DNA from: Blastocladiella emersonii ATCC 22665 | Lineage: Eukaryota; Fungi; Blastocladiomycota | NCBI GenBank assembly: GCA_025594325.1 | Contig: JANHCV010000001.1 | Span: 2,170,001-2,234,000 of the forward strand | Length of the DNA stretch: 64,000 nt | Reading direction: 5' to 3' | In this document: positions 14,010 to 64,000 of the stretch, one piece after another | Position numbering within the stretch: position 1 is the first letter of the stretch | Layout of the letters: the number at the start of each line of letters is the position of its first letter | Translations under genes and position numbers: made by a program | Notes under the pieces: generated by a model | Seen by the model: only the letters and a program-made list of their open reading frames with translations | Told to the model about the DNA's origin: nothing | Databases searched by the model: none

Positions 14010-14099
14010 CTTAGCGTGTTCCTCACTCAACAACTCTCGGATTCTCAATTCAAGACCAGAGCATATCGAGACGACAAGTATTAGGCATGTATTCTAGAG

Positions 14100-37431: not shown

Positions 37432-38475
37432 AGCTGGGCGAATAGATGCCGATTGATGATCATTTGCTGGAACCGATCCCATTGACCCTGTTTGACATGC
37501 GGTCGACTTCAGCGTGAAGTGTGGGACGCGAACGCGAACCACCATTCCAACAACCGCAGTATTTGATCAGCGGGGCCAGCAACACGTTGAAGCGCGTTCT
37601 CGGGTGCTTCTCTCGTGGTACCGAGGCCGGCCGAGAGCACCGTCGCCGGGCCCGCGCCAGCTGAATGATGATGCGTCGTGTGATGAACCAGCGTCGTGAT
37701 CATGGTCATGGTCCGCGACCGCAGTTGTTCCACAGTCAGTGATAGGTCGGTAAGCAATGGTGCCGCGGAGGAAACGAACGTATATTGAGAGCTGCAGGAA
37801 CTGAAATCATAGACGTCAGTGGACCAACAAAGGCCGCGGCCATGGCCGCGAAGTCCGTGGTCAGCCGCTCCTCGCGCGTGGCCACCACCGATCCTCGCGC
37901 TGATTCGACTTGCGCTCGTCTACCCGAGCAAGCCTGACTGTTGAGAGAGTTGATCGGACCGTTGAAGTTGACGAAGGCGAGCGCTCAGACCGGCTATCGA
38001 CGTGGATGATGGACTCGGCTATGGCCGCGGCGGCGGTCGGGCGAGATCCGCGGCCAAACCTCACTCGCGCTCACATACGGATGAAGTTAGCGAGCAGAGC
38101 GCGAATCGACGGCGAGGGCCGGGACGCAGGAGTCGGGCAGTTTCCAAGTTGGCCGTGGCCATGGTCGCGAAGCCGACTTGAGCTAGCGCTCCATGGACTG
38201 GGAGCTGACTGAGAGCGCTTCCAGCAGCCGATACTCCACACGGGCATGAACAAGGCCGTGACGGATGCGGAGCAAGTTCAAATCGATGGCCATGGCCATG
38301 GCCGCGTCGCGAAAGGATCATCAAGGCAGGAGACGATGGAGTCCGGAGTCACGTAAGAACGATACGTTGCATTGCGGAGAAAAAGAAACACGATGGATGA
38401 ACAAAACAAGAAACTAAAGAGAAGAATACAGGGAGGAGAGAAGGAAGGAAGAGAGGGGGAGAGACCGAGAACGCC

Positions 38476-41400
38476 TTAGCGCGTCTTGCCCGTCGACTTC
38501 TCGAACGCGGCGATCAGCGAGGCCACCTTGGACGACACCTCGACAGCGGGCTCGGCGGGGAGCGGGGCGGGCGCCTTGAACACGGCCGGGATCGACACGC
38601 GGCGCGCGGACGTCGGCGGGGAGCTGGGCGGCGACGAGACCGACTCGTAGATGGAGCGGAGGGCCTGGACGCTCGACGACGGGGAGCCGGGGCGGGACGA
38701 GTTGCTGGAAGTGGTGGTGGTCGTGGTCGTGGTGAAGGAGGTGGTCGAGATGGTCAACGAGTTGGCGGCGACGACGGGGGCGGCGGCGGACTCCTGCTGT
38801 TCCTCAGCGATGATAATGGCGGCATTCACCCCCTCTTCTTCCACGACGGCAGCCGGAACACGCGCTGCAGTAGACTGGGAGAGGAGGTCTTGCCGAAAGG
38901 GCTGCTGGTCGGCCGGGGCCTTGGCCTGACCAGCCTCGACCTCGGCGGTGGTCGCAGGGGCGGCTCCGGTCGCGGAGGACAAGGCATCAGAGAAGGAAGT
39001 AGAGGAGACGGCGGCGGCGGTCGACTCGGAGGAGCTGGCGGTCGACGACTCGGTCTGGAGGAGGGAAGCGGAGGAGGGGGTAGTGGTGGTGGTGGTGGTG
39101 GAGGTGGAGGTGGAGGCAATCACCCCTGCATCCACGACGGCAGCGACGAGCGAAACACTCGCTGCAGCAGCGTCGGTGCAGGGGTCGTTCCGAAAGGGCT
39201 GCTGGGCCTCGTCGGAGGGCGCGACGGGCTCGCCAGCAGCAGCGGCATCGACATCGGTGGCCGTCACGGGCGCGTCAGCCTCGGGGGCGGCGACAGCGGC
39301 AGGGACAGGGACGGCGGCGGACTCGACATCGACGTCGGAGACGTTCGTTCCGTGCTCATGGACAGCATTTACCCCCTCTTCCACGACGGCAGACGGAACA
39401 TCCGCTGCAGAAGACTGGGAGAGGAGGTCGTGTTGAAAGGGCTGCTGGTCCGGCAAAGGCGACGCGGCGACGGCCGCGGGCGAACCCGCGGCGTCCTCAG
39501 CGACAACCGAGCGCGAAACCGGAACGTCATCCTCATCGATGCCGAGCTCGTCAATGAACGTCGGAGCAGGAACGTCAGCGACCGCGGGCGCGGCAGCGGC
39601 CTCGGCGGCAGGCTCGACGACAGCGAGGTGGTAAGCGACAGCCACGCCGGTCACGGGGACGGTGGCGATGGTCTCGTCGACGGGGGCGAGCTCACGGATC
39701 GAATCGGTCGCCTGCGAGGTGGCGGTGGTCGTGACAGTCGACTCGATGACCTCGGCGACAGCAGAGGTGGACGAAACGACGACACCAGCATCGGGAATGG
39801 TGGCGAGGGCGGCGGCGAGGCCGGCAGCCGAGGTCGACGAAGCGGAGGAGATGCTGCGAACCGTGCGGGTCACGACAGGGGTCGACGAGGTGACGGTGGT
39901 CGTAGAAGTCGAGGTGCCGCCGTTAGACACGGTGGTGCTCGAGGCCGACGACGAGGTGGCGCCGATGAGCACGGTCACGGACTCGGACTCGGTGGGCTCC
40001 TCGGTGATGGTCTCGACGACCTGCTCGCCGGTGACCGGGTTCGTGCGGATGATACGACGGGTCACGATCTTGCGGGTGATCAGGCGCTGGGAGCCGGGCT
40101 GCGACGAAACGCTAGTCGTCGTGAAAGACGACGCGCCAGCGGACTGCTGGGCGGCCTAGAGAGACGTGTCAGAAGGGCCCCGAAACCATGATGAGAGGAG
40201 GTGACGTACGTCGGCATCAGAAGTCGCGGTGACCTGGACGGATGACGAGGTCGAAGACGAGGTGGTGGAACCGGAAACGACTACGTGCGTAAGGTAAAAG
40301 TGTTAACGAGATAAGGAAAATTCAAAGTATGCCGACAGGGCGGAAGAGCAAGGCGTACCAGAAGCGGAGGACACAACAGACGACCCAGCAGCAATCGACT
40401 CAACAACGGAAGAGGCGACGTAAGCATCAACGACGTCGGCGGCGGTGATCTCGACCACCTTGGTACGCTCCACGTCCGACTCGGTGATGTGGACGAAATC
40501 CGACTCGGCCGCAGCTGCGGCAGCGACAACGAACCCGGAGCCCGTCTCGTCGACAACGGCGGTCTCGGTAGTAACCTTCGACTCAACGACATCCATGAGG
40601 ACCTCCGACTCGTGAACGGTGACCTCCTGGCTGGAAGACTGCTCGTGGGCAGCGGTGGTCGTCGACGCACCAAAAATGGCGCGCGAGATCGAGGTGAAAA
40701 GGCCGCCCGAAGAAGCAGCCTCACTGGGGACCTCCGAAACGGCCTCGGTCGACGACGACGCGGTCGACTCGACGACGGCCGTGGTCTCGGCGGTCTCGGT
40801 GACCTCGGTGGCCTCGACAACGACGGCGGCAGCCTCCGAAACGACCTCGGTGGCGATCTCGACCGACTCGATAGTCTCGGTGGTCTCGACGGCAACCTGG
40901 GTCTCCGAAACGACCTCGGTCGACTCGACAACGACCTCGGTGGTGGTCTCGGTCGTCTCGACCGTCTCGACCGTCTCGGTGGTGGTCTGGACCGTCTCGG
41001 TCGACTCGACGACGACGGCGGCGGCGGCCTGCTCCGAAACGACCTCGGTGGACTCGACGACGACCTCGGTGGCGGTCTCGGTCGACTCGACGGCGGTAAC
41101 GACCTCGGCCGACTCGACAACGACCTCGGTGGTGGTCTCCGAGACGATCTCGGCGGTCTCGGTGGTCTGAACCGTCTCGGTCGACTCAACGACGACAGTC
41201 TCCTCCGAAACGACCTCGGTGGTGGTCTCGGTGGTCTCGACGACCGTCGTGGACTCGGTCGACTCGACAACAACCGTCTCGGTCGTCTCGGTCGTCTCGG
41301 TCGTCTCGGTCGTCGACTCGGCGGCGGCGGCGGTGATCTCGACCTCCGACACGGCCGAAGCGCACTCGGCAGCAACGGCAACCTCCGAAACGACCTCGGT

Positions 41401-44400
41401 CGACTCGGCAGCGACGATCACGGCCTCGGCGTGGATCTCCGTGGCCTCGATGGCGATGGCGCGCTCCGAAACGACCTCGGTGGTGGTCTCGGTCGACTCG
41501 ACAGCGACGGCGACCTCAGTGGCGGTCGTCTCGGTCGTCTCGATCGTGGTCGTGGTCTCGACAGTCTCGGTGGTGGTGGTGTGCACCTCCGAAACGGTCT
41601 CGGTCGACGACGACTCGGCGGTGGCCGCCTCGGTCGACTCAACGACGACGGCCTGCTCCGAAACGACCTCGGTGGCCTCGACAACGACGGCAGCGGCCTC
41701 CGAAACGACCTCGGTGGTCTCGGTGGTCTCGACGGCGACGATAGTCTCCTCGGAAACGACCTCGGTGGCGACGGTCTCGACCGACTCGGTGGTGGTCGAC
41801 TCGACGACGACAGTCTCCTCGGAAACGACCTCGGTCGACTCGGTGGTGATGGTCTGGACCTCCGAAACGACCTCGGTGGTCTCGACGGCGACCTGCGTCT
41901 CCTCGGAAACGACCTCGGTGGCGACAGTCTCGACCGACTCGACAACGACAGTCTCCTCGGAAACAACCTCCGTGGTCTCGGCCGACTCGACAACGACCTC
42001 GGTGGTGGTCGTGGTGGTCTCGACGGCGGCGACGGTCTCGGTGCACTCGACCTCGGCGGCGGCGGCGGCCTCCGAAACGACGACCTCGGCGTGGATCTCC
42101 GTGGCCTCGACGGCAATGGCGCGCTCGGCAACGACCTCGGTCGACTCGTGGACCTCGTGGACCTCGGTGGTGGTGGTCTCGGTCGTCTCGGTCGTCTCGA
42201 TCGTGGTCGTGGTGGTGTGCACCTCCGAAACGGCCTCGGTCGACGACGACGCGGTCGACTCGACGACGGCCGTGGTCTCGGCGGTCTCGGTGACCTCGGT
42301 GGCCTCGACAACGACGGCGGCAGCCTCCGAAACGACCTCGGTGGCGATCTCGACCGACTCGATAGTCTCGGTGGTCTCGACGGCAACCTGGGTCTCCGAA
42401 ACGACCTCGGTCGACTCGACAACGACCTCGGTGGTGGTCTCGGTCGTCTCGACCGTGTCGACCGTCTCGGTGGTGGTCTGGACCGTCTCGGTCGACTCGA
42501 CGACGACGGCGGCGGCGGCCTGCTCCGAAACGACCTCGGTGGACTCGACGACGACCTCGGTGGCGGTCTCGGTCGACTCGACGGCGGTAACGACCTCGGC
42601 CGACTCGACAACGACCTCGGTGGTGGTCTCCGAGACGATCTCGGCGGTCTCGGTGGTCTGAACCGTCTCGGTCGACTCAACGACGACAGTCTCCTCCGAA
42701 ACGACCTCGGTGGTGGTCTCGGTGGTCTCGACGACCGTCGTGGACTCGGTCGACTCGACAACAACCGTCTCGGTCGTCTCGGTCGTCTCGGTCGTCTCGG
42801 TCGTCGACTCGGCGGCGGCGGCGGTGATCTCGACCTCCGACACGGCCGAAGCGCACTCGGCAGCAACGGCAACCTCCGAAACGACCTCGGTCGACTCGGC
42901 AGCGACGATCACGGCCTCGGCGTGGATCTCCGTGGCCTCGATGGCGATGGCGCGCTCCGAAACGACCTCGGTGGTGGTCTCGGTCGACTCGACAGCGACG
43001 GCGACCTCAGTGGCGGTCGTCTCGGTCGTCTCGATCGTGGTCGTGGTCTCGACAGTCTCGGTGGTGGTGGTGTGCACCTCCGAAACGGTCTCGGTCGACG
43101 ACGACTCGGCGGTGGCCGCCTCGGTCGACTCAACGACGACGGCCTGCTCCGAAACGACCTCGGTGGCCTCGACAACGACGGCAGCGGCCTCCGAAACGAC
43201 CTCGGTGGTCTCGGTGGTCTCGACGGCGACGATAGTCTCCTCGGAAACGACCTCGGTGGCGACGGTCTCGACCGACTCGGTGGTGGTCGACTCGACGACG
43301 ACAGTCTCCTCGGAAACGACCTCGGTCGACTCGGTGGTGATGGTCTGGACCTCCGAAACGACCTCGGTGGTCTCGACGGCGACCTGCGTCTCCTCGGAAA
43401 CGACCTCGGTGGCGACAGTCTCGACCGACTCGACAACGACAGTCTCCTCGGAAACAACCTCCGTGGTCTCGGCCGACTCGACAACGACCTCGGTGGTGGT
43501 CGTGGTGGTCTCGACGGCGGCGACGGTCTCGGTGCACTCGACCTCGGCGGCGGCGGCGGCCTCCGAAACGACGACCTCGGCGTGGATCTCCGTGGCCTCG
43601 ACGGCAATGGCGCGCTCGGCAACGACCTCGGTCGACTCGTGGACCTCGTGGACCTCGGTGGTGGTGGTCTCGGTCGTCTCGGTCGTCTCGATCGTGGTCG
43701 TGGTGGTGTGCACCTCCGAAACGGCCTCGGTCGACGACGACGCGGTCGACTCGACGACGGCCGTGGTCTCGGCGGTCTCGGTGACCTCGGTGGCCTCGAC
43801 AACGACGGCGGCAGCCTCCGAAACGACCTCGGTGGCGATCTCGACCGACTCGATAGTCTCGGTGGTCTCGACGGCAACCTGGGTCTCCGAAACGACCTCG
43901 GTCGACTCGACAACGACCTCGGTGGTGGTCTCGGTCGTCTCGACCGTGTCGACCGTCTCGGTGGTGGTCTGGACCGTCTCGGTCGACTCGACGACGACGG
44001 CGGCGGCGGCCTGCTCCGAAACGACCTCGGTGGACTCGACGACGACCTCGGTGGCGGTCTCGGTCGACTCGACGGCGGTAACGACCTCGGCCGACTCGAC
44101 AACGACCTCGGTGGTGGTCTCCGAGACGATCTCGGCGGTCTCGGTGGTCTGAACCGTCTCGGTCGACTCAACGACGACAGTCTCCTCCGAAACGACCTCG
44201 GTGGTGGTCTCGGTGGTCTCGACGACCGTCGTGGACTCGGTCGACTCGACAACAACCGTCTCGGTCGTCTCGGTCGTCTCGGTCGTCTCGGTCGTCGACT
44301 CGGCGGCGGCGGCGGTGATCTCGACCTCCGACACGGCCGAAGCGCACTCGGCAGCAACGGCAACCTCCGAAACGACCTCGGTCGACTCGGCAGCGACGAT

Positions 44401-47400
44401 CACGGCCTCGGCGTGGATCTCCGTGGCCTCGATGGCGATGGCGCGCTCCGAAACGACCTCGGTGGTGGTCTCGGTCGACTCGACAGCGACGGCGACCTCA
44501 GTGGCGGTCGTCTCGGTCGTCTCGATCGTGGTCGTGGTCTCGACAGTCTCGGTGGTGGTGGTGTGCACCTCCGAAACGGTCTCGGTCGACGACGACTCGG
44601 CGGTGGCCGCCTCGGTCGACTCAACGACGACGGCCTGCTCCGAAACGACCTCGGTGGCCTCGACAACGACGGCAGCGGCCTCCGAAACGACCTCGGTGGT
44701 CTCGGTGGTCTCGACGGCGACGATAGTCTCCTCGGAAACGACCTCGGTGGCGACGGTCTCGACCGACTCGGTGGTGGTCGACTCGACGACGACAGTCTCC
44801 TCGGAAACGACCTCGGTCGACTCGGTGGTGATGGTCTGGACCTCCGAAACGACCTCGGTGGTCTCGACGGCGACCTGCGTCTCCTCGGAAACGACCTCGG
44901 TGGCGACAGTCTCGACCGACTCGACAACGACAGTCTCCTCGGAAACAACCTCCGTGGTCTCGGCCGACTCGACAACGACCTCGGTGGTGGTCGTGGTGGT
45001 CTCGACGGCGGCGACGGTCTCGGTGCACTCGACCTCGGCGGCGGCGGCGGCCTCCGAAACGACGACCTCGGCGTGGATCTCCGTGGCCTCGACGGCAATG
45101 GCGCGCTCGGCAACGACCTCGGTCGACTCGTGGACCTCGTGGACCTCGGTGGTGGTGGTCTCGGTCGTCTCGGTCGTCTCGATCGTGGTCGTGGTGGTGT
45201 GCACCTCCGAAACGGCCTCGGTCGACGACGACGCGGTCGACTCGACGACGGCCGTGGTCTCGGCGGTCTCGGTGACCTCGGTGGCCTCGACAACGACGGC
45301 GGCAGCCTCCGAAACGACCTCGGTGGCGATCTCGACCGACTCGATAGTCTCGGTGGTCTCGACGGCAACCTGGGTCTCCGAAACGACCTCGGTCGACTCG
45401 ACAACGACCTCGGTGGTGGTCTCGGTCGTCTCGACCGTCTCGACCGTCTCGGTGGTGGTCTGGACCGTCTCGGTCGACTCGACGACGACGGCGGCGGCGG
45501 CCTGCTCCGAAACGACCTCGGTGGACTCGACGACGACCTCGGTGGCGGTCTCGGTCGACTCGACGGCGGTAACGACCTCGGCCGACTCGACAACGACCTC
45601 GGTGGTGGTCTCCGAGACGATCTCGGCGGTCTCGGTGGTCTGAACCGTCTCGGTCGACTCAACGACGACAGTCTCCTCCGAAACGACCTCGGTGGTGGTC
45701 TCGGTGGTCTCGACGACCGTCGTGGACTCGGTCGACTCGACAACAACCGTCTCGGTCGTCTCGGTCGTCTCGGTCGTCTCGGTCGTCGACTCGGCGGCGG
45801 CGGCGGTGATCTCGACCTCCGACACGGCCGAAGCGCACTCGGCAGCAACGGCAACCTCCGAAACGACCTCGGTCGACTCGGCAGCGACGATCACGGCCTC
45901 GGCGTGGATCTCCGTGGCCTCGATGGCGATGGCGCGCTCCGAAACGACCTCGGTGGTGGTCTCGGTCGACTCGACAGCGACGGCGACCTCAGTGGCGGTC
46001 GTCTCGGTCGTCTCGATCGTGGTCGTGGTCTCGACAGTCTCGGTGGTGGTGGTGTGCACCTCCGAAACGGTCTCGGTCGACGACGACTCGGCGGTGGCCG
46101 CCTCGGTCGACTCAACGACGACGGCCTGCTCCGAAACGACCTCGGTGGCCTCGACAACGACGGCAGCGGCCTCCGAAACGACCTCGGTGGTCTCGGTGGT
46201 CTCGACGGCGACGATAGTCTCCTCGGAAACGACCTCGGTGGCGACGGTCTCGACCGACTCGGTGGTGGTCGACTCGACGACGACAGTCTCCTCGGAAACG
46301 ACCTCGGTCGACTCGGTGGTGATGGTCTGGACCTCCGAAACGACCTCGGTGGTCTCGACGGCGACCTGCGTCTCCTCGGAAACGACCTCGGTGGCGACAG
46401 TCTCGACCGACTCGACAACGACAGTCTCCTCGGAAACAACCTCCGTGGTCTCGGCCGACTCGACAACGACCTCGGTGGTGGTCGTGGTGGTCTCGACGGC
46501 GGCGACGGTCTCGGTGCACTCGACCTCGGCGGCGGCGGCGGCCTCCGAAACGACGACCTCGGCGTGGATCTCCGTGGCCTCGACGGCAATGGCGCGCTCG
46601 GCAACGACCTCGGTCGACTCGTGGACCTCGTGGACCTCGGTGGTGGTGGTCTCGGTCGTCTCGGTCGTCTCGATCGTGGTCGTGGTGGTGTGCACCTCCG
46701 AAACGGCCTCGGTCGACGACGACGCGGTCGACTCGACGACGGCCGTGGTCTCGGCGGTCTCGGTGACCTCGGTGGCCTCGACAACGACGGCGGCAGCCTC
46801 CGAAACGACCTCGGTGGCGATCTCGACCGACTCGATAGTCTCGGTGGTCTCGACGGCAACCTGGGTCTCCGAAACGACCTCGGTCGACTCGACAACGACC
46901 TCGGTGGTGGTCTCGGTCGTCTCGACCGTGTCGACCGTCTCGGTGGTGGTCTGGACCGTCTCGGTCGACTCGACGACGACGGCGGCGGCGGCCTGCTCCG
47001 AAACGACCTCGGTGGACTCGACGACGACCTCGGTGGCGGTCTCGGTCGACTCGACGGCGGTAACGACCTCGGCCGACTCGACAACGACCTCGGTGGTGGT
47101 CTCCGAGACGATCTCGGCGGTCTCGGTGGTCTGAACCGTCTCGGTCGACTCAACGACGACAGTCTCCTCCGAAACGACCTCGGTGGTGGTCTCGGTGGTC
47201 TCGACGACCGTCGTGGACTCGGTCGACTCGACAACAACCGTCTCGGTCGTCTCGGTCGTCTCGGTCGTCTCGGTCGTCGACTCGGCGGCGGCGGCGGTGA
47301 TCTCGACCTCCGACACGGCCGAAGCGCACTCGGCAGCAACGGCAACCTCCGAAACGACCTCGGTCGACTCGGCAGCGACGATCACGGCCTCGGCGTGGAT

Positions 47401-50400
47401 CTCCGTGGCCTCGATGGCGATGGCGCGCTCCGAAACGACCTCGGTGGTGGTCTCGGTCGACTCGACAGCGACGGCGACCTCAGTGGCGGTCGTCTCGGTC
47501 GTCTCGATCGTGGTCGTGGTCTCGACAGTCTCGGTGGTGGTGGTGTGCACCTCCGAAACGGTCTCGGTCGACGACGACTCGGCGGTGGCCGCCTCGGTCG
47601 ACTCAACGACGACGGCCTGCTCCGAAACGACCTCGGTGGCCTCGACAACGACGGCAGCGGCCTCCGAAACGACCTCGGTGGTCTCGGTGGTCTCGACGGC
47701 GACGATAGTCTCCTCGGAAACGACCTCGGTGGCGACGGTCTCGACCGACTCGGTGGTGGTCGACTCGACGACGACAGTCTCCTCGGAAACGACCTCGGTC
47801 GACTCGGTGGTGATGGTCTGGACCTCCGAAACGACCTCGGTGGTCTCGACGGCGACCTGCGTCTCCTCGGAAACGACCTCGGTGGCGACAGTCTCGACCG
47901 ACTCGACAACGACAGTCTCCTCGGAAACAACCTCCGTGGTCTCGGCCGACTCGACAACGACCTCGGTGGTGGTCGTGGTGGTCTCGACGGCGGCGACGGT
48001 CTCGGTGCACTCGACCTCGGCGGCGGCGGCGGCCTCCGAAACGACGACCTCGGCGTGGATCTCCGTGGCCTCGACGGCAATGGCGCGCTCGGCAACGACC
48101 TCGGTCGACTCGTGGACCTCGTGGACCTCGGTGGTGGTGGTCTCGGTCGTCTCGGTCGTCTCGATCGTGGTCGTGGTGGTGTGCACCTCCGAAACGGCCT
48201 CGGTCGACGACGACGCGGTCGACTCGACGACGGCCGTGGTCTCGGCGGTCTCGGTGACCTCGGTGGCCTCGACAACGACGGCGGCAGCCTCCGAAACGAC
48301 CTCGGTGGCGATCTCGACCGACTCGATAGTCTCGGTGGTCTCGACGGCAACCTGGGTCTCCGAAACGACCTCGGTCGACTCGACAACGACCTCGGTGGTG
48401 GTCTCGGTCGTCTCGACCGTGTCGACCGTCTCGGTGGTGGTCTGGACCGTCTCGGTCGACTCGACGACGACGGCGGCGGCGGCCTGCTCCGAAACGACCT
48501 CGGTGGACTCGACGACGACCTCGGTGGCGGTCTCGGTCGACTCGACGGCGGTAACGACCTCGGCCGACTCGACAACGACCTCGGTGGTGGTCTCCGAGAC
48601 GATCTCGGCGGTCTCGGTGGTCTGAACCGTCTCGGTCGACTCAACGACGACAGTCTCCTCCGAAACGACCTCGGTGGTGGTCTCGGTGGTCTCGACGACC
48701 GTCGTGGACTCGGTCGACTCGACAACAACCGTCTCGGTCGTCTCGGTCGTCTCGGTCGTCTCGGTCGTCGACTCGGCGGCGGCGGCGGTGATCTCGACCT
48801 CCGACACGGCCGAAGCGCACTCGGCAGCAACGGCAACCTCCGAAACGACCTCGGTCGACTCGGCAGCGACGATCACGGCCTCGGCGTGGATCTCCGTGGC
48901 CTCGATGGCGATGGCGCGCTCCGAAACGACCTCGGTGGTGGTCTCGGTCGACTCGACAGCGACGGCGACCTCAGTGGCGGTCGTCTCGGTCGTCTCGATC
49001 GTGGTCGTGGTCTCGACAGTCTCGGTGGTGGTGGTGTGCACCTCCGAAACGGTCTCGGTCGACGACGACTCGGCGGTGGCCGCCTCGGTCGACTCAACGA
49101 CGACGGCCTGCTCCGAAACGACCTCGGTGGCCTCGACAACGACGGCAGCGGCCTCCGAAACGACCTCGGTGGTCTCGGTGGTCTCGACGGCGACGATAGT
49201 CTCCTCGGAAACGACCTCGGTGGCGACGGTCTCGACCGACTCGGTGGTGGTCGACTCGACGACGACAGTCTCCTCGGAAACGACCTCGGTCGACTCGGTG
49301 GTGATGGTCTGGACCTCCGAAACGACCTCGGTGGTCTCGACGGCGACCTGCGTCTCCTCGGAAACGACCTCGGTGGCGACAGTCTCGACCGACTCGACAA
49401 CGACAGTCTCCTCGGAAACAACCTCCGTGGTCTCGGCCGACTCGACAACGACCTCGGTGGTGGTCGTGGTGGTCTCGACGGCGGCGACGGTCTCGGTGCA
49501 CTCGACCTCGGCGGCGGCGGCGGCCTCCGAAACGACGACCTCGGCGTGGATCTCCGTGGCCTCGACGGCAATGGCGCGCTCGGCAACGACCTCGGTCGAC
49601 TCGTGGACCTCGTGGACCTCGGTGGTGGTGGTCTCGGTCGTCTCGGTCGTCTCGATCGTGGTCGTGGTGGTGTGCACCTCCGAAACGGCCTCGGTCGACG
49701 ACGACGCGGTCGACTCGACGACGGCCGTGGTCTCGGCGGTCTCGGTGACCTCGGTGGCCTCGACAACGACGGCGGCAGCCTCCGAAACGACCTCGGTGGC
49801 GATCTCGACCGACTCGATAGTCTCGGTGGTCTCGACGGCAACCTGGGTCTCCGAAACGACCTCGGTCGACTCGACAACGACCTCGGTGGTGGTCTCGGTC
49901 GTCTCGACCGTCTCGACCGTCTCGGTGGTGGTCTGGACCGTCTCGGTCGACTCGACGACGACGGCGGCGGCGGCCTGCTCCGAAACGACCTCGGTGGACT
50001 CGACGACGACCTCGGTGGCGGTCTCGGTCGACTCGACGGCGGTAACGACCTCGGCCGACTCGACAACGACCTCGGTGGTGGTCTCCGAGACGATCTCGGC
50101 GGTCTCGGTGGTCTGAACCGTCTCGGTCGACTCAACGACGACAGTCTCCTCCGAAACGACCTCGGTGGTGGTCTCGGTGGTCTCGACGACCGTCGTGGAC
50201 TCGGTCGACTCGACAACAACCGTCTCGGTCGTCTCGGTCGTCTCGGTCGTCTCGGTCGTCGACTCGGCGGCGGCGGCGGTGATCTCGACCTCCGACACGG
50301 CCGAAGCGCACTCGGCAGCAACGGCAACCTCCGAAACGACCTCGGTCGACTCGGCAGCGACGATCACGGCCTCGGCGTGGATCTCCGTGGCCTCGATGGC

Positions 50401-53400: not shown

Positions 53401-56400
53401 GACCTCGGTGGTGGTCTCGGTCGACTCGACAGCGACGGCGACCTCAGTGGCGGTCGTCTCGGTCGTCTCGATCGTGGTCGTGGTCTCGACAGTCTCGGTG
53501 GTGGTGGTGTGCACCTCCGAAACGGTCTCGGTCGACGACGACTCGGCGGTGGCCGCCTCGGTCGACTCAACGACGACGGCCTGCTCCGAAACGACCTCGG
53601 TGGCCTCGACAACGACGGCAGCGGCCTCCGAAACGACCTCGGTGGTCTCGGTGGTCTCGACGGCGACGATAGTCTCCTCGGAAACGACCTCGGTGGCGAC
53701 GGTCTCGACCGACTCGGTGGTGGTCGACTCGACGACGACAGTCTCCTCGGAAACGACCTCGGTCGACTCGGTGGTGATGGTCTGGACCTCCGAAACGACC
53801 TCGGTGGTCTCGACGGCGACCTGCGTCTCCTCGGAAACGACCTCGGTGGCGACAGTCTCGACCGACTCGACAACGACAGTCTCCTCGGAAACAACCTCCG
53901 TGGTCTCGGCCGACTCGACAACGACCTCGGTGGTGGTCGTGGTGGTCTCGACGGCGGCGACGGTCTCGGTGCACTCGACCTCGGCGGCGGCGGCGGCCTC
54001 CGAAACGACGACCTCGGCGTGGATCTCCGTGGCCTCGACGGCAATGGCGCGCTCGGCAACGACCTCGGTCGACTCGTGGACCTCGTGGACCTCGGTGGTG
54101 GTGGTCTCGGTCGTCTCGGTCGTCTCGATCGTGGTCGTGGTGGTGTGCACCTCCGAAACGGCCTCGGTCGACGACGACGCGGTCGACTCGACGACGGCCG
54201 TGGTCTCGGCGGTCTCGGTGACCTCGGTGGCCTCGACAACGACGGCGGCAGCCTCCGAAACGACCTCGGTGGCGATCTCGACCGACTCGATAGTCTCGGT
54301 GGTCTCGACGGCAACCTGGGTCTCCGAAACGACCTCGGTCGACTCGACAACGACCTCGGTGGTGGTCTCGGTCGTCTCGACCGTCTCGACCGTCTCGGTG
54401 GTGGTCTGGACCGTCTCGGTCGACTCGACGACGACGGCGGCGGCGGCCTGCTCCGAAACGACCTCGGTGGACTCGACGACGACCTCGGTGGCGGTCTCGG
54501 TCGACTCGACGGCGGTAACGACCTCGGCCGACTCGACAACGACCTCGGTGGTGGTCTCCGAGACGATCTCGGCGGTCTCGGTGGTCTGAACCGTCTCGGT
54601 CGACTCAACGACGACAGTCTCCTCCGAAACGACCTCGGTGGTGGTCTCGGTGGTCTCGACGACCGTCGTGGACTCGGTCGACTCGACAACAACCGTCTCG
54701 GTCGTCTCGGTCGTCTCGGTCGTCTCGGTCGTCGACTCGGCGGCGGCGGCGGTGATCTCGACCTCCGACACGGCCGAAGCGCACTCGGCAGCAACGGCAA
54801 CCTCCGAAACGACCTCGGTCGACTCGGCAGCGACGATCACGGCCTCGGCGTGGATCTCCGTGGCCTCGATGGCGATGGCGCGCTCCGAAACGACCTCGGT
54901 GGTGGTCTCGGTCGACTCGACAGCGACGGCGACCTCAGTGGCGGTCGTCTCGGTCGTCTCGATCGTGGTCGTGGTCTCGACAGTCTCGGTGGTGGTGGTG
55001 TGCACCTCCGAAACGGTCTCGGTCGACGACGACTCGGCGGTGGCCGCCTCGGTCGACTCAACGACGACGGCCTGCTCCGAAACGACCTCGGTGGCCTCGA
55101 CAACGACGGCAGCGGCCTCCGAAACGACCTCGGTGGTCTCGGTGGTCTCGACGGCGACGATAGTCTCCTCGGAAACGACCTCGGTGGCGACGGTCTCGAC
55201 CGACTCGGTGGTGGTCGACTCGACGACGACAGTCTCCTCGGAAACGACCTCGGTCGACTCGGTGGTGATGGTCTGGACCTCCGAAACGACCTCGGTGGTC
55301 TCGACGGCGACCTGCGTCTCCTCGGAAACGACCTCGGTGGCGACAGTCTCGACCGACTCGACAACGACAGTCTCCTCGGAAACAACCTCCGTGGTCTCGG
55401 CCGACTCGACAACGACCTCGGTGGTGGTCGTGGTGGTCTCGACGGCGGCGACGGTCTCGGTGCACTCGACCTCGGCGGCGGCGGCGGCCTCCGAAACGAC
55501 GACCTCGGCGTGGATCTCCGTGGCCTCGACGGCAATGGCGCGCTCGGCAACGACCTCGGTCGACTCGTGGACCTCGTGGACCTCGGTGGTGGTGGTCTCG
55601 GTCGTCTCGGTCGTCTCGATCGTGGTCGTGGTGGTGTGCACCTCCGAAACGGCCTCGGTCGACGACGACGCGGTCGACTCGACGACGGCCGTGGTCTCGG
55701 CGGTCTCGGTGACCTCGGTGGCCTCGACAACGACGGCGGCAGCCTCCGAAACGACCTCGGTGGCGATCTCGACCGACTCGATAGTCTCGGTGGTCTCGAC
55801 GGCAACCTGGGTCTCCGAAACGACCTCGGTCGACTCGACAACGACCTCGGTGGTGGTCTCGGTCGTCTCGACCGTCTCGACCGTCTCGGTGGTGGTCTGG
55901 ACCGTCTCGGTCGACTCGACGACGACGGCGGCGGCGGCCTGCTCCGAAACGACCTCGGTGGACTCGACGACGACCTCGGTGGCGGTCTCGGTCGACTCGA
56001 CGGCGGTAACGACCTCGGCCGACTCGACAACGACCTCGGTGGTGGTCTCCGAGACGATCTCGGCGGTCTCGGTGGTCTGAACCGTCTCGGTCGACTCAAC
56101 GACGACAGTCTCCTCCGAAACGACCTCGGTGGTGGTCTCGGTGGTCTCGACGACCGTCGTGGACTCGGTCGACTCGACAACAACCGTCTCGGTCGTCTCG
56201 GTCGTCTCGGTCGTCTCGGTCGTCGACTCGGCGGCGGCGGCGGTGATCTCGACCTCCGACACGGCCGAAGCGCACTCGGCAGCAACGGCAACCTCCGAAA
56301 CGACCTCGGTCGACTCGGCAGCGACGATCACGGCCTCGGCGTGGATCTCCGTGGCCTCGATGGCGATGGCGCGCTCCGAAACGACCTCGGTGGTGGTCTC

Positions 56401-59400
56401 GGTCGACTCGACAGCGACGGCGACCTCAGTGGCGGTCGTCTCGGTCGTCTCGATCGTGGTCGTGGTCTCGACAGTCTCGGTGGTGGTGGTGTGCACCTCC
56501 GAAACGGTCTCGGTCGACGACGACTCGGCGGTGGCCGCCTCGGTCGACTCAACGACGACGGCCTGCTCCGAAACGACCTCGGTGGCCTCGACAACGACGG
56601 CAGCGGCCTCCGAAACGACCTCGGTGGTCTCGGTGGTCTCGACGGCGACGATAGTCTCCTCGGAAACGACCTCGGTGGCGACGGTCTCGACCGACTCGGT
56701 GGTGGTCGACTCGACGACGACAGTCTCCTCGGAAACGACCTCGGTCGACTCGGTGGTGATGGTCTGGACCTCCGAAACGACCTCGGTGGTCTCGACGGCG
56801 ACCTGCGTCTCCTCGGAAACGACCTCGGTGGCGACAGTCTCGACCGACTCGACAACGACAGTCTCCTCGGAAACAACCTCCGTGGTCTCGGCCGACTCGA
56901 CAACGACCTCGGTGGTGGTCGTGGTGGTCTCGACGGCGGCGACGGTCTCGGTGCACTCGACCTCGGCGGCGGCGGCGGCCTCCGAAACGACGACCTCGGC
57001 GTGGATCTCCGTGGCCTCGACGGCAATGGCGCGCTCGGCAACGACCTCGGTCGACTCGTGGACCTCGTGGACCTCGGTGGTGGTGGTCTCGGTCGTCTCG
57101 GTCGTCTCGATCGTGGTCGTGGTGGTGTGCACCTCCGAAACGGCCTCGGTCGACGACGACGCGGTCGACTCGACGACGGCCGTGGTCTCGGCGGTCTCGG
57201 TGACCTCGGTGGCCTCGACAACGACGGCGGCAGCCTCCGAAACGACCTCGGTGGCGATCTCGACCGACTCGATAGTCTCGGTGGTCTCGACGGCAACCTG
57301 GGTCTCCGAAACGACCTCGGTCGACTCGACAACGACCTCGGTGGTGGTCTCGGTCGTCTCGACCGTCTCGACCGTCTCGGTGGTGGTCTGGACCGTCTCG
57401 GTCGACTCGACGACGACGGCGGCGGCGGCCTGCTCCGAAACGACCTCGGTGGACTCGACGACGACCTCGGTGGCGGTCTCGGTCGACTCGACGGCGGTAA
57501 CGACCTCGGCCGACTCGACAACGACCTCGGTGGTGGTCTCCGAGACGATCTCGGCGGTCTCGGTGGTCTGAACCGTCTCGGTCGACTCAACGACGACAGT
57601 CTCCTCCGAAACGACCTCGGTGGTGGTCTCGGTGGTCTCGACGACCGTCGTGGACTCGGTCGACTCGACAACAACCGTCTCGGTCGTCTCGGTCGTCTCG
57701 GTCGTCTCGGTCGTCGACTCGGCGGCGGCGGCGGTGATCTCGACCTCCGACACGGCCGAAGCGCACTCGGCAGCAACGGCAACCTCCGAAACGACCTCGG
57801 TCGACTCGGCAGCGACGATCACGGCCTCGGCGTGGATCTCCGTGGCCTCGATGGCGATGGCGCGCTCCGAAACGACCTCGGTGGTGGTCTCGGTCGACTC
57901 GACAGCGACGGCGACCTCAGTGGCGGTCGTCTCGGTCGTCTCGATCGTGGTCGTGGTCTCGACAGTCTCGGTGGTGGTGGTGTGCACCTCCGAAACGGTC
58001 TCGGTCGACGACGACTCGGCGGTGGCCGCCTCGGTCGACTCAACGACGACGGCCTGCTCCGAAACGACCTCGGTGGCCTCGACAACGACGGCAGCGGCCT
58101 CCGAAACGACCTCGGTGGTCTCGGTGGTCTCGACGGCGACGATAGTCTCCTCGGAAACGACCTCGGTGGCGACGGTCTCGACCGACTCGGTGGTGGTCGA
58201 CTCGACGACGACAGTCTCCTCGGAAACGACCTCGGTCGACTCGGTGGTGATGGTCTGGACCTCCGAAACGACCTCGGTGGTCTCGACGGCGACCTGCGTC
58301 TCCTCGGAAACGACCTCGGTGGCGACAGTCTCGACCGACTCGACAACGACAGTCTCCTCGGAAACAACCTCCGTGGTCTCGGCCGACTCGACAACGACCT
58401 CGGTGGTGGTCGTGGTGGTCTCGACGGCGGCGACGGTCTCGGTGCACTCGACCTCGGCGGCGGCGGCGGCCTCCGAAACGACGACCTCGGCGTGGATCTC
58501 CGTGGCCTCGACGGCAATGGCGCGCTCGGCAACGACCTCGGTCGACTCGTGGACCTCGTGGACCTCGGTGGTGGTGGTCTCGGTCGTCTCGGTCGTCTCG
58601 ATCGTGGTCGTGGTGGTGTGCACCTCCGAAACGGCCTCGGTCGACGACGACGCGGTCGACTCGACGACGGCCGTGGTCTCGGCGGTCTCGGTGACCTCGG
58701 TGGCCTCGACAACGACGGCGGCAGCCTCCGAAACGACCTCGGTGGCGATCTCGACCGACTCGATAGTCTCGGTGGTCTCGACGGCAACCTGGGTCTCCGA
58801 AACGACCTCGGTCGACTCGACAACGACCTCGGTGGTGGTCTCGGTCGTCTCGACCGTCTCGACCGTCTCGGTGGTGGTCTGGACCGTCTCGGTCGACTCG
58901 ACGACGACGGCGGCGGCGGCCTGCTCCGAAACGACCTCGGTGGACTCGACGACGACCTCGGTGGCGGTCTCGGTCGACTCGACGGCGGTAACGACCTCGG
59001 CCGACTCGACAACGACCTCGGTGGTGGTCTCCGAGACGATCTCGGCGGTCTCGGTGGTCTGAACCGTCTCGGTCGACTCAACGACGACAGTCTCCTCCGA
59101 AACGACCTCGGTGGTGGTCTCGGTGGTCTCGACGACCGTCGTGGACTCGGTCGACTCGACAACAACCGTCTCGGTCGTCTCGGTCGTCTCGGTCGTCTCG
59201 GTCGTCGACTCGGCGGCGGCGGCGGTGATCTCGACCTCCGACACGGCCGAAGCGCACTCGGCAGCAACGGCAACCTCCGAAACGACCTCGGTCGACTCGG
59301 CAGCGACGATCACGGCCTCGGCGTGGATCTCCGTGGCCTCGATGGCGATGGCGCGCTCCGAAACGACCTCGGTGGTGGTCTCGGTCGACTCGACAGCGAC

Positions 59401-62400
59401 GGCGACCTCAGTGGCGGTCGTCTCGGTCGTCTCGATCGTGGTCGTGGTCTCGACAGTCTCGGTGGTGGTGGTGTGCACCTCCGAAACGGTCTCGGTCGAC
59501 GACGACTCGGCGGTGGCCGCCTCGGTCGACTCAACGACGACGGCCTGCTCCGAAACGACCTCGGTGGCCTCGACAACGACGGCAGCGGCCTCCGAAACGA
59601 CCTCGGTGGTCTCGGTGGTCTCGACGGCGACGATAGTCTCCTCGGAAACGACCTCGGTGGCGACGGTCTCGACCGACTCGGTGGTGGTCGACTCGACGAC
59701 GACAGTCTCCTCGGAAACGACCTCGGTCGACTCGGTGGTGATGGTCTGGACCTCCGAAACGACCTCGGTGGTCTCGACGGCGACCTGCGTCTCCTCGGAA
59801 ACGACCTCGGTGGCGACAGTCTCGACCGACTCGACAACGACAGTCTCCTCGGAAACAACCTCCGTGGTCTCGGCCGACTCGACAACGACCTCGGTGGTGG
59901 TCGTGGTGGTCTCGACGGCGGCGACGGTCTCGGTGCACTCGACCTCGGCGGCGGCGGCGGCCTCCGAAACGACGACCTCGGCGTGGATCTCCGTGGCCTC
60001 GACGGCAATGGCGCGCTCGGCAACGACCTCGGTCGACTCGTGGACCTCGTGGACCTCGGTGGTGGTGGTCTCGGTCGTCTCGGTCGTCTCGATCGTGGTC
60101 GTGGTGGTGTGCACCTCCGAAACGGCCTCGGTCGACGACGACGCGGTCGACTCGACGACGGCCGTGGTCTCGGCGGTCTCGGTGACCTCGGTGGCCTCGA
60201 CAACGACGGCGGCAGCCTCCGAAACGACCTCGGTGGCGATCTCGACCGACTCGATAGTCTCGGTGGTCTCGACGGCAACCTGGGTCTCCGAAACGACCTC
60301 GGTCGACTCGACAACGACCTCGGTGGTGGTCTCGGTCGTCTCGACCGTCTCGACCGTCTCGGTGGTGGTCTGGACCGTCTCGGTCGACTCGACGACGACG
60401 GCGGCGGCGGCCTGCTCCGAAACGACCTCGGTGGACTCGACGACGACCTCGGTGGCGGTCTCGGTCGACTCGACGGCGGTAACGACCTCGGCCGACTCGA
60501 CAACGACCTCGGTGGTGGTCTCCGAGACGATCTCGGCGGTCTCGACGACTTCGGCCGTGCACTCGGCAGCGACGGCCACGTTCTCGACGTTTTCCTCGGC
60601 GACGACGATGTCGCGGTGGTCGGCGTCGGCCTTGACCGTCTCGATGGTGATCTCCTCGGTCGTGACAGTGGCCTCGACCTGCTCGGTATCCTCCATGGTC
60701 TCGCACTCGGTGGTGGCGGCGGCCTTGGAGAAACCGATGCCGCGGGACGACTCCTCAGCGACGACAGTGGTCTCGACGGTGGCCGATGACGAGGCGGAGG
60801 TCGTGGTGGTGGTGGTAGTGGTCGACGACGACGACGACGACTTGGACACCTCAATGTGCTTCTGGATGAGCACCTGGAGCTCCTTGACCTCGGAGACGAG
60901 GGTGTCGCGCTCGGTGGTGACCTGGACGAGCTGGGTGCGGACCGAGGCGAGCTCGGAGACGAGCGTGTTGCGCTCCTCAATGAGCTTGGTGTAGTCGACG
61001 CGGAGCGTGGAGCGCTCCTCGGCCCAGTGGTTCTCCTTGGTGAGGAGGGCCTCGCACCACTCGTTGTGCTGGGCGGCCATGGCCTCAGCGTGGGTGCACT
61101 CGATGGTGGTGATGCGCTTGGCCGTGGCCTCGTGGATGGCCTCGAGCTCCTGGGCGTGGGCCTCCGTGAGCTGAGTGATCTCGGCCTTGAGCGCCTCGAT
61201 CTCGGCGCGCAGCGACTCGGCCTTGTCCTGGACGTTGGCGGCGGTGGTGGCCGAGGCGTCGGTCTCGCCGATGGCGGCCGAGGGGAACTCGGACAGCTTG
61301 GACACGAGCTCGAAGTTCTTCTCGGTGAGCGACTGCTGGACGGCGAGCAGGTGCGCGTTCTCCTTCCGCAGGGCCTCGAGCTCCTGGCCGAGCTCCGAGA
61401 TGCCGGCCTCGAGGGTGAACTTGGCGTTCTCGAGGGCCTGGACGCGGTCGGCGGTGACGCGCAGCTCCGACACGGTGACTTGGAGGGTGGCGATCTCCTT
61501 GTCCTTGTTGACGTCGGCCTCCTTGAGGTCGCGCGAGTGCTTCTCGATCATGGCGTTGTACTGCTCGGCAAAGTGGGTCGAGATCTCGGCAATCTCGGCG
61601 GCACCACGGTTCTGCAGCGTCGCGAGCTCCTTCTTGGCGGCCTCGAGCTTGTCGACGAGATCGTGGTGCTCCTCGAGCTTGCACTGGATGACGAGCGAGG
61701 TGTATGGGTCAGCATGCGGTTTGATAGAGGTAAGGGGTAAGAACTGAGCGAGAGTCACACGTACGATCTTGTCCTCCTGGACCGACTGAATCTGGGCGTC
61801 GATGGCGCGCGCGCTCTGGTCGAGCTCGTCGGCGCGCTGGACCGACGCGGCGAGGGCCTCCTGCACCTGGATGAGGGTGGCGCGGGTCTCCTCGAGGGTG
61901 GTGGTGAGCTTGAGCATCTCGGCGGCGTGAGCCTCGTGCAGGGCAGCCATCTCGGCGCGGTGGGTGGCCGAGACCGACTCGAGCTCGGCGGCGTGCGAGG
62001 CCTGGAGCGAGGCGAGGGTGGCGGCGACCGAGTCCTCGGTGTGGACGCAGGCCGTGGCGATGGTGGCGGCGGCGCCGCCCTCGGACGACGAGTCGCCGTT
62101 GGCGGCGGCGGCCGTGGCGCTGACCTTGGCGAGGGTCGAGCGGCACTCGCCGAGCTCGGCCGAGTGCTTGGCGGTGAGCACGGCGACCTGGGCCTCGTGC
62201 GCCTGGGCGAGCTCCTCGCACGCGTGCAGGTGCTGCGTCGCGAGCGTCTGCTTGAGCTCCTCCATCTCGCGTGCGTGCTCGAGGCGGACGGCCTCGAGGT
62301 CGACGGTCACGACGCTGACGACGGTGCCGGTCTCGGAGACCTGGCTGGTCGAGTTGTCGTGCTCGCTGGCCGCGGCCGTGGCCGGGCGCGACGCGTCCTC

Positions 62401-63386
62401 GTGCTCCTCGCCCGAAACCGAGTTGGCGGCCGAGGCGGAGATGAGCTTCTCCTTGAGATCGTGGTTCTGGATGGTGGTTGCAGAGAGTGCATGGTCGTTA
62501 GTAAGTTGTCGGGGATTCGACGTAAGGGAGGGAAGAGGTCCAGATCTGGCGACTGCCGACGCGCCGGCGAGACGCGTCGCCTCAGCTGAGCGGGCCGAAC
62601 GGGTGGCGCGGACAAGCGGGAACCCGAGATCAGGGCGATCATCAAGCCTCAGCCCACGTTGCGAGCCAGCGCTTGTTCGCCGCCGCTGCTGCGGAACGCC
62701 ACCCAAACCGACCGATCGCGCAACAACGCGACGCGACGGCGCGAGGGACGAGAGGAGTAGGACGAAAGAAGACGACGTACCTCCGTCTGCAGGAGCTGGA
62801 GCTGGAGCTTGAGCGACTCCATCTGCTCGAGCAGGTGCTTCTCGGCCTCACGCTTCTCGGCGACCGACGAGGTCACCTTACGCGTGGTGGTAGTCGAGCC
62901 GGCACCGGGGGCCGACGAGACCTTGCGCGCGGTCAGCGTCGACGAGCTGGTAGCGCCCGGGATGCGGCGGATCGACGAGGCGGCCGTCGTGGTGGTCGAC
63001 GAGGCGACCGAGCCCGAGGTCGGCTTCTTGGCGAGGCGCGACGCCGACGTGGTGGTCGGGCGGGCGTACGACGGCACGGCCGAGGACGACGACGAGGTCG
63101 TGGTGGTGCGCGTCTTGGCGGGACTCGAGGCGGCCGAGGTGGCGGCCGAGTGCGGCGCCGAAGACGACGTGCGGCGCGCGGCAGCCGACGACGCCGAGGA
63201 CGACGACGACGAGCTGGCGGTGGCGGCGGCCGAGTGGGCGCCTGCGCCCTCCTTGGAGGCGGCCACCGACGTGCGGCGGGCCGACGACGAGCTGGCGGCC
63301 GAGTGGGCGGCAGAGGCGCCCGAGGCGGCGGCCGAGCCCGAGGAAGCCGTCAGGCCGGTCTTGACACGGGGACCGGACGACGACAT
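38476..63386 (-). CDS. Giant ~8,127-aa protein: basic S/T/A-rich N-terminus, long coiled-coil, 13.3 x 497-aa acidic E/T/V repeats, low-complexity C-terminus; 5 exons (63386-62781, 62466-61765, 61683-40359, 40280-40210, 40155-38476)
   Basis: A stop-free 22.4-kb minus frame. Four GTACG...YAG introns (62467-62780, 61684-61764, 40281-40358, 40156-40209) join the exons in phase; the CDS sums to 24,384 nt. No recognised family. Confidence 0.85.
38821..39452 (-). repeat. Three imperfect ~90-bp in-frame repeats (QQPF...AVVEEGV) in the last exon of the giant gene
   Basis: Copies at ~38821-38912, ~39118-39205 and ~39364-39452 encode QQPFRQDLLSQSTAARVPAAVVEEEGVN, QQPFRNDP...AAVVDAGVI and QQPFQHDLLSQSSAADVPSAVVEEGVN. 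Confidence 0.75.
40730..60544. repeat. Coding tandem array: 1,491-bp unit x ~13.3 copies, almost identical
   Basis: The ORF track shows identical peptides recurring at exact 1,491-bp spacing (41219, 42710 ... 59111). The only variant I found is one C/G site per unit. Confidence 0.97.
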
Positions 63387-64000
63387 GGTGTTGGTGGTGT
63401 TGGTGGTGATAATGACCTTGGTAGAAGGAGTGGAGTAGACTGGGCGGGTGCAAGGCTGCAAATCTTACACGGGGCCAGGTAGGAGGGGAGAAGGTGGAGA
63501 CTAAAGAGTACAGAGAGCTCGGCGAGCAGGGTAATACAGGAGAGACGAGAGGGGGAGGGCGGAGGGGGGATGTTCTACGGTTTTCGTTGAGGACGAAGGA
63601 GGGGAGATGGGTAACTGGTGCTGCTGACGGCGCGAATCAGCAGGCAAAGCCAACAGTGTAGGGGAGACGACGAGACAGATGAGAGGACGAGGGGGGGAGG
63701 GCGGGAGGGGGGTTGCACGGGTGCAGGGGGGTGTTGCTGGGTTGGTAGGCTTGGGTTGCGTGTATAGCTAGCGATGCGCAAAGGAGCAGGAGAGCGGGGG
63801 CCGCTCGCGGGGGGCGCTGGCGCTTTGTAGAGGTCGGGCGGTGGCGAGGCCCAACTCGGGCGGCTGCGTGTGGCTCGGCCGCAACCCTTCATCTCATGCG
63901 AGAGGTGCAAGGCGTGCCCGCGGAAATGGCCTTGTTGACGCATTTACCCTGCCCAGCTGCCATAAATAAGATCCCTCGCGCGCCAGACTCGCGGCCCAAG

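Follow-up and report, generated by a model that had tools for sequence, protein, structure and literature searches.

A predicted giant protein with a polyanionic tandem array in the blastoclad fungus Blastocladiella emersonii

The stretch of DNA analyzed here, called the window throughout, comprises 64,000 nucleotides (nt) of contig JANHCV010000001.1 of Blastocladiella emersonii ATCC 22665 (assembly GCA_025594325.1, positions 2,170,001 to 2,234,000) and has a G+C content of 66%. On its minus strand, from 63386 to 38476, it carries a predicted gene of four exons, whose joined coding sequence of 24,465 nt contains no internal stop and would give a protein of 8,154 amino acids (aa), ~843 kDa and a net charge of –1,653, the greater part of which is a tandem array of nearly identical acidic units. 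That the locus is a real protein-coding gene is very probable, and it is apparently restricted to the Blastocladiella emersonii lineage; a role as an intracellular spacer, set out in the last section, is proposed tentatively.

Gene model and parts of the predicted protein

The core of the model is a minus-strand open reading frame (ORF) of 7,467 codons (40303-62706), to which three introns connect a 5' exon and two 3' exons. Translation would start at the ATG at 63386, which is preceded, 26 codons upstream, by an in-frame stop. The exons, introns and non-repeat parts are the following, with GC3 standing for the G+C fraction at third codon positions:

62781-63386, minus strand: exon 1, 606 nt, aa 1-202; basic S/A/T-rich head, the last ~27 codons (62781-62861) starting the heptad rod
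62467-62780, minus strand: intron 1, 314 nt, GTACGT donor, branch site CTTACTAAC, CAG acceptor
40359-62466, minus strand: exon 2, 22,108 nt, aa 203-7571 plus one base; rod, linker, entire array and a unique C-terminal stretch
40281-40358, minus strand: intron 2, 78 nt, GTACGC...TTAAC...TAG, phase 1
40210-40280, minus strand: exon 3, 71 nt, S/T-rich
40156-40209, minus strand: intron 3, 54 nt, GTACGT...CTGAC...TAG
38476-40155, minus strand: exon 4, aa 7596-8154 and the stop codon at 38476-38478; A/S/V/T-rich tail
aa 1-175, minus strand: head, within exon 1, which over its 202 aa has 27% S, 20% A and 14% T and a net charge of +16; acidic residues first appear at aa 46
60838-62861, minus strand: helical heptad rod, aa 176-745 (~570 aa), split by intron 1; GC3 0.94
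60550-60837, minus strand: linker, aa 746-841, a run of Ser/Thr and then a degenerate E/T/V-rich stretch with D, N, K, G, M and F
40360-40722, minus strand: unique C-terminal end of exon 2, aa 7451-7571, acidic and V/T/S/A-rich, no Pfam family

All three introns have a GTACG donor, a CTAAC-like branch site and an AG acceptor. Published introns of B. emersonii measure 55-333 nt, begin with GT, end with AG and carry a CTAAC branch (PMC2773782), and the predicted ones (314, 78 and 54 nt) fit these norms of the species in range, ends and branch. Across the junction between exons 1 and 2 both the reading frame and the heptad pattern continue.

A preliminary description of this DNA had assigned the repeat to an exon of 21.3 kb, a figure that the model replaces with the 22,108 nt of exon 2. 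Its outline otherwise stands: a giant protein of intracellular type with a polyanionic E/T/V spacer (here 6,609 of the 8,154 aa), arranged as a basic head, a coiled coil, 13.3 repeat units of 497 aa and a low-complexity tail, with no signal peptide or membrane span. Its account of the unit composition, namely ten residue types, two Arg, and Asp at the variant site only, proved exact when counted.

The head contains several sites of the type recognized by basophilic kinases, RRTS at aa 37 and 71, KKPT at 120, RKVS at 154 and RKVT at 169. A reading of the head as a mitochondrial presequence was considered and rejected as implausible for a polyanion of 843 kDa. In the rod, the heptad score is 0.356 against 0.249 +/- 0.016 for shuffled sequences, that is 6.6 standard deviations (SD) above them, and AlphaFold2, run on the rod with no alignment, predicts long helices (aa 259-325, 333-443, 456-594 and 608-745) of 67-139 residues, with a confidence score (pLDDT) of 65-86 and a helix length of ~68 nm for the rod. 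The linker that follows looks, from its sequence, like an older proto-repeat, because D, N, K, G, M and F are still present in it.

Beyond the array, aa 7451-8154 are A/S/V/T-rich. A block of ~85 aa occurs twice in the tail (39256-39510 and 38725-38955), the two copies aligning with a score of 134, where shuffled sequences reach 41 +/- 6.7. The tail also holds three QQPF(Q/R)xD motifs at aa 7832, 7913 and 8012 (starting at 39447, 39204 and 38907), an RRVS site at aa 8113 (38593-38604) and, at its extreme end, short helical motifs.

Neither end of the protein resembles that of a secreted or anchored one. On inspection of the sequence, with no dedicated predictor, the N-terminus, polar and basic in composition, shows neither a hydrophobic core nor a signal peptide; the C-terminus ends in the polar ...STGKTR with no hydrophobic end of the glycosylphosphatidylinositol (GPI) type. 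The most hydrophobic 19-residue segments reach Kyte-Doolittle values of 2.0 and 1.7, consist largely of Ala and Val, include Asp or Pro/His, and come to +4.1 to +4.7 kcal/mol on the Hessa scale. One segment, aa 7924-7942, lies above the Kyte-Doolittle threshold and was considered as a membrane anchor, but it is Ala/Val-rich, contains Asp and stands at ~+4 kcal/mol on the Hessa scale. The sequence thus appears to offer no credible membrane span.

These ends bear directly on the idea that the gene encodes a secreted, or wall- or coat-bound, mucin-like Thr/Ser-rich glycoprotein whose 5' exon, with the signal peptide, was missed. Thr and Ser make up 35% of the repeat unit, fungal surface proteins often carry identical tandem repeats, and only ~600 nt upstream of the ATG lie within the window. 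Nevertheless this reading is scarcely credible: besides the N-terminus with no hydrophobic core and the in-frame stop upstream of it, the lack of a GPI-type C-terminus and the lack of a predicted membrane span, a heptad rod of 570 aa, a basic head and 24% Glu are not adhesin features. The marks of fungal adhesins and mucins such as Flo, Als and Msb2, a signal peptide and a C-terminal GPI or transmembrane anchor, are absent from the predicted protein.

The repeat array and its reading frame

The array and its single internal variant are defined as follows:

40717-60559, minus strand: tandem array, >90% self-identity at a lag of 1,491 nt, 13.3 copies, ~19.8 kb
40966-60349, minus strand: the only variable site of the array, its edges apart, at 40966 + n x 1491; the codon is GAG (Glu) where the plus strand has C and GAC (Asp) where it has G

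In the protein the array occupies aa 842-7450 (40723-60549), 6,609 aa with a net charge of –1,556, and contains 1,576 Glu, 6 Asp, 26 Arg and no Lys, with Val, Ile and Thr together accounting for 51% of the residues. The 497-aa unit (T128 E119 V112 A62 S45 I14 Q7 H6 R2 C2) is written in ten amino acids only, K, L, M, G, P, N, F, Y and W being absent, and has a net charge of –117, or –0.235 per residue. Glu residues are mostly 3-4 residues apart and never more than 9, only 5 of the 118 Glu-Glu spacings being adjacent pairs, and words such as TEVVSE, VVVESTE and ETTETT are frequent. AlphaFold2 returns no fold for one unit, with short strands only and a pLDDT of 35.5; the contour length of the repeat would be ~2.4 µm.

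Read along the array, the variable site has the order C G G C G G C G G C C C C C, which shows a higher-order repeat of three units (4,473 nt) followed by a run of five identical units. How far this order and the number of units reflect the genome depends on the assembly, which consists of 21 contigs totaling 34.27 Mb and was put together by the La Jolla Assembler from PacBio HiFi reads (run SRR19593111), with Pilon used for polishing (PMC9730499); the use of HiFi reads makes gross misassembly less likely. More limited errors have to be weighed separately. The gene could be real and the array partly a product of assembly or polishing, the true number of units being different, most likely by multiples of three, and differences between units perhaps erased. 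Pilon polishing and graph error correction can homogenize repeats. In this case the array of 19.8 kb exceeds the mean HiFi read length of 10.5 kb, obtained from 13.7-kb fragments, and the polishing used 65-nt reads (PMC9730499); to count the three-unit blocks, single reads of at least ~15.2 kb are needed, long enough to connect the flank at 40716 with the C-C pair at 55876, and all three DNA runs in which the locus is present derive from a single sample, probably the assembled one. By contrast, the non-trivial order of the single-nucleotide variant, (CGG)x3 and then five C, was kept, a pattern not expected of an array that had been collapsed or guessed, and the run of five identical units is countable with reads of 7.7 kb. 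With ~185-fold coverage (6.37 Gb over 34.27 Mb), some reads of more than 15 kb are also expected (PMC9730499). An array that is partly artefactual is unlikely, and it would be compatible with a spacer role and with all the other explanations considered here. An error of plus or minus three units, and the erasure of rare differences between units, is possible, and the copy number of exactly 13.3 can be accepted with modest confidence.

Four of the six frames over the array are open or nearly open, so that ORF length alone is weak evidence of coding. The longest competitor is the following:

40489-60789, plus strand: antisense ORF, 6,766 codons, G+C 0.89/0.48/0.62 at codon positions 1/2/3, a mirrored pattern

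This ORF was rejected as a gene on its antisense codon-position signature (0.89 at the first and 0.62 at the third position), and its openness is accounted for by the complements of GAG, ACC and GTC codons, which are stop-free. Two more frames have one stop per 1,491-nt unit, leaving ORFs of 480 and 484 codons in each unit. Such open antisense and additional frames could mislead gene finders.

Several lines of evidence single out the minus-strand frame. At codon positions 1, 2 and 3 the unit has a G+C of 0.62/0.48/0.90 and the rod one of 0.66/0.43/0.94; the head and the tail have a GC3 of 0.93 and 0.82, so that all four parts fall between 0.82 and 0.94. Neighboring genes with Pfam domains (kinase, gamma-tubulin complex component and Gpi1) have a GC3 of 0.85-0.94, and by this resemblance the frame looks coding. 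Moreover, ~1,545 codons outside the repeat are also open, and the frame is kept through three phase-compatible introns. The same observations weigh on the suggestion that the locus is dead or silent, unexpressed, and open because the repeat is young and its codons rarely mutate to stops. No RNA run was found listed for it, and four of six array frames are open or nearly so; yet the head, rod, linker and tail provide those ~1,545 open non-repeat codons with GC3 of 0.82-0.94, the three introns preserve the frame, and, although only 167 of the 3,264 possible non-synonymous single-base changes in the unit (equally weighted) give stops, a constraint on composition is seen. A silent locus is thus very unlikely.

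This constraint comes from a comparison within the unit, which is itself an old duplication of halves of 220 and 277 aa. Over 206 aligned residues the half-units share 77% identity, and their alignment scores 16 SD higher than shuffled sequences do. They have diverged by 0.37 at synonymous (dS) and 0.16 at non-synonymous sites (dN), giving dN/dS of 0.44; 32 of the 158 residues conserved between them are encoded by different codons. The unit uses 18 codons, from which 47-56% of the single-base non-synonymous changes lead to a residue absent from the unit or to a stop, and still all 48 residue differences between the half-units stay within the ten-letter alphabet. The chance of this would be ~0.5^48 for independent point mutations, a figure that slippage and conversion between sub-repeats weaken without removing the signal. 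Since the differences never leave the alphabet and dN/dS is 0.44, we conclude from the sequence that the composition of the unit was selected at the protein level.

The half-units also bear on a neutral reading of the array, in which a coiled-coil protein gene would carry a tolerated, recently expanded coding minisatellite of functionless and strain-variable length, with only the ends, and perhaps one unit, being of any importance. The 13 units are identical except for one conservative E/D site and are too young for selection on length to be visible, the strain was isolated more than 70 years ago (PMC9730499), and the protein searches found no orthologues with a comparable array. Against this stand the constraint on composition and frame between the half-units, with dN/dS of 0.44 and no forbidden residue in 48 changes, and the cost of transcribing and translating an extra 20 kb of high-GC3 coding sequence if it were useless. 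A neutral array appears rather unlikely.

The other genes of the window are ordinary eukaryotic ones, for a protein kinase, a gamma-tubulin complex component, GT34 glycosyltransferases, a transporter of the TPT family and Gpi1. Those located in detail are:

6916-9021, minus strand: gamma-tubulin complex component, two ORFs with GCP_N_terminal (8017-9021) and GCP_C_terminal (6916-7968)
14050-15171, minus strand, and 15529-18696, plus strand: divergent GT34 ORFs, both with weak matches to galactosyltransferases of the GMA12/MNN10 type
36158-37456, plus strand: Gpi1, a component of the GPI-GlcNAc transferase, convergent with the 3' end of the giant gene and ~1 kb from it

The two ORFs of the gamma-tubulin complex component are presumably joined by a short intron. 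The ORF at 15529-18696 also holds a triose-phosphate/nucleotide-sugar transporter domain, and could represent either a transporter-glycosyltransferase fusion or two genes merged in one ORF. The ~12 kb between 18700 and 31100 have a lower G+C of 0.57-0.63, no ORF of at least 300 codons and no Rfam family, and may consist of intron-rich genes or non-coding DNA; an Rfam scan of the whole window gave no match.

Searches for relatives and comparison with known proteins

No homologue of any part of the giant protein was found in Pfam, in the sequences of the PDB, in 1.84 billion representative proteins, in word-indexed searches or in metagenome contigs. At E <=1, Pfam gave sub-threshold leucine-zipper matches in the rod only, and the head, the unit, the tail and the C-terminus of exon 2 were blank; the PDB sequences gave no match. 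A phmmer search of the 1.84 billion representatives with a 639-aa piece of the rod returned nothing at E <=0.001. The word-indexed search for giant relatives with residues 1-660 of exon 2 (rod, linker and start of the array) and those with the tail and with the unit were equally blank, and no locus was confirmed among the metagenome contigs compared with the rod. In the ESM Atlas the tail and the unit drew weak hits only, with scores of 0.64 and 0.83, values of low recognition and at noise level that are apparently driven by composition. The published proteome of B. emersonii evidently lies outside the libraries searched, because the protein of the window was not returned either, and orthologues may exist in poorly sampled blastoclads. 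A search of the literature found no paper on this giant protein and none on the zoospore proteome of B. emersonii.

Judged by its sequence, the giant protein would be a new variant in a loose class of giant acidic repeat scaffolds, outside every described family. The preliminary description had suggested that its likeness to known acidic spacers is convergent and had named a homology search with the non-repeat ends as a check; rod and tail gave no relatives, and since no homology to titin PEVK, neurofilaments or Pf332 was found, convergence remains the appropriate term.

Among these proteins Pf332 is perhaps the one that, by analogy, it works most like. Pf332, antigen 332 of Plasmodium falciparum, is a protein of ~700 kDa, more than 90% of which consists of repeats of negatively charged Glu and hydrophobic residues, encoded in one huge exon (PMC3502387). 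The whole protein faces the cytosol, is peripheral and interacts with a cytoskeleton; the repeat units are short, differ from one another and follow the consensus (X)3-EE-(X)2-EE-(X)2-3, and the protein has an N-terminal DBL domain, a predicted transmembrane segment and a Trp-rich end (PMC3502387). The protein described here shares the giant size and the mostly Glu-rich acidic repeat from one huge exon. It differs in its identical units of 497 aa, in having Thr as the commonest residue and in its coiled-coil rod, and it has neither a DBL nor any other Pfam domain, few EE pairs (5 of 118 spacings) and no sequence similarity to Pf332.

The order of parts recalls the neurofilament proteins M and H, in which a basic, phosphorylatable, Ser-rich head and an alpha-helical heptad rod are followed by a long, Glu-rich, unfolded projection, probably a polyelectrolyte brush that sets spacing. 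The same order of head, rod and acidic projection, with a basic head and a heptad rod, is found here, but such a layout alone does not define intermediate filament proteins. Unlike those of neurofilaments, the rod has no match to the Pfam family Filament (PF00038, E <=1) and measures ~570 aa instead of ~310 aa, and the projection has no Lys and no KSP repeats and is ~10 times longer. In MAP2 and tau a kinase-regulated, basic, Ser/Thr-rich binding region is combined with a long acidic projection that spaces microtubules, and a basic Ser/Thr-rich region is likewise joined to a long acidic chain in the present protein. However, tubulin-binding repeats (PF00418) were not found in head, rod, unit or tail at E <=1, and the basic part lies at the N-terminus, ahead of a coiled coil.

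The PEVK segment of titin is a long, unfolded, Glu/Val-rich segment in a giant intracellular protein and acts as an entropic spring. The array is also a long Glu/Val-rich segment within a giant protein, whereas PEVK is rich in Pro and Lys, with PPAK motifs of ~28 aa and poly-E stretches, and the unit has neither Pro nor Lys; the protein has no Ig or Fn3 domains, and its array is a pure polyanion where PEVK is a polyampholyte. The giant scaffolds of Spirostomum work through repeated binding sites for Ca2+-binding proteins. The GSBPs of this ciliate are described as very large protist repeat proteins and proposed scaffolds of a Ca2+-dependent mechanical system, in whose contractile apparatus two major Ca2+-binding proteins are among the components (PMC9946354). 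Both systems thus feature very large repeat proteins, but no such binding motif or partner is evident in the present one, nor any similarity.

A proposed spacer role and its consequences

The interpretation put forward here, which is possible but stays short of an even chance, is that the protein is an intracellular, rod-dimerized, two-ended polyanionic spacer, tether or brush, acting entropically and electrostatically. The ~570-aa heptad rod would pair two or more chains. The small basic head, with its RRxS/T sites, would attach electrostatically to an anionic surface, e.g., microtubules or acidic membranes, in a manner made reversible through phosphorylation, and the tail, via the duplicated block with QQPF motifs and the terminal helices, would bind a second partner. 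The chain of 6,609 residues between them would stay unfolded and be extended by charge repulsion and by its beta-branched residues, and would hold structures apart, or fill or stiffen a compartment of the cell. The 13 near-identical units would have arisen by very recent unequal exchange of blocks of one and three units, from an older unit already selected for composition before the expansion. The interpretation in the preliminary description is plausible in outline; the cytoskeletal location, the role as ruler or tether, the Ca2+ response and the zoospore expression that it suggested drew no support from the analysis.

Several observations weigh against this interpretation. Concerning expression, no RNA run was listed when runs were sought for 60560-63400, and the text of the genome paper does not contain the term "RNA-seq", its annotation section naming ab initio gene predictors (PMC9730499). 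Concerning conservation, no orthologue with a comparable array emerged from the protein searches, and there is thus no conservation from which to argue function. Concerning the unfolded state, the low AlphaFold2 confidence for the unit may merely reflect folding with no alignment, and on the charge-hydropathy plot the unit is at the borderline of order and disorder, its mean hydropathy being 0.515 where the boundary lies at 0.498; screening of its charge could allow the unit, given its 51% V/I/T, to take up beta structure. Finally, the near-perfect identity of the units and their 13.3 copies are properties of the assembly.

The abundance of carboxylates also allows a different function, that of a high-capacity, low-affinity store or buffer of cations (Ca2+, Mg2+, K+ or polyamines) in the formation or germination of zoospores, perhaps with a beta-rich condensation when loaded. 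The repeat has 1,576 Glu, no Lys and only 26 Arg, and the 51% of beta-branched residues, the short predicted strands and the position of the unit at the boundary of order and disorder are in keeping with such a condensation. By contrast, single spaced Glu residues bind Ca2+ weakly, no EF-hand loop, calsequestrin domain or other calcium-binding family was matched by Pfam in any part of the protein, and the coiled-coil rod, basic head and motif-bearing tail would be superfluous in a buffer. A cation buffer is therefore quite improbable.

A bolder extension of the spacer role is that the protein is the main component of an unrecognized polyanionic gel or brush in the zoospore, switching from an extended to a beta-rich state when its ~1,580 carboxylates are screened. 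Such a gel would set the spacing of, e.g., the microtubule cone, the nuclear cap or the membranes of the side body and eyespot, the trigger of the screening would be Ca2+ or a drop in pH, and the switch would provide the wall-less cell with an ATP-independent mechanochemical element at encystment. We regard this as very improbable; if it were true, the protein would represent a new class of cell scaffold, one that responds to stimuli and has no relatives.

Whichever role applies, the locus is relevant to annotation, as assemblers and gene finders readily fragment or collapse genes of this sort, and most of the protein would be invisible to proteomics based on trypsin or on GluC. Within the repeat, trypsin has just two cleavage sites per unit, whereas head, rod and tail do contain Lys and Arg; GluC is poor for the repeat because a Glu every 3-4 residues would leave 3-5-mers, peptides that are too short. 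It also shows the amplification and homogenization of 1.5-kb coding units within a gene. If expressed, the protein would be among the largest of fungal proteins and an extreme natural polyelectrolyte, made of ten amino acids with –0.24 charges per residue and no lysine in its repeat, and would thus offer a clean natural system for studying the structural use that cells make of chain length and charge density.

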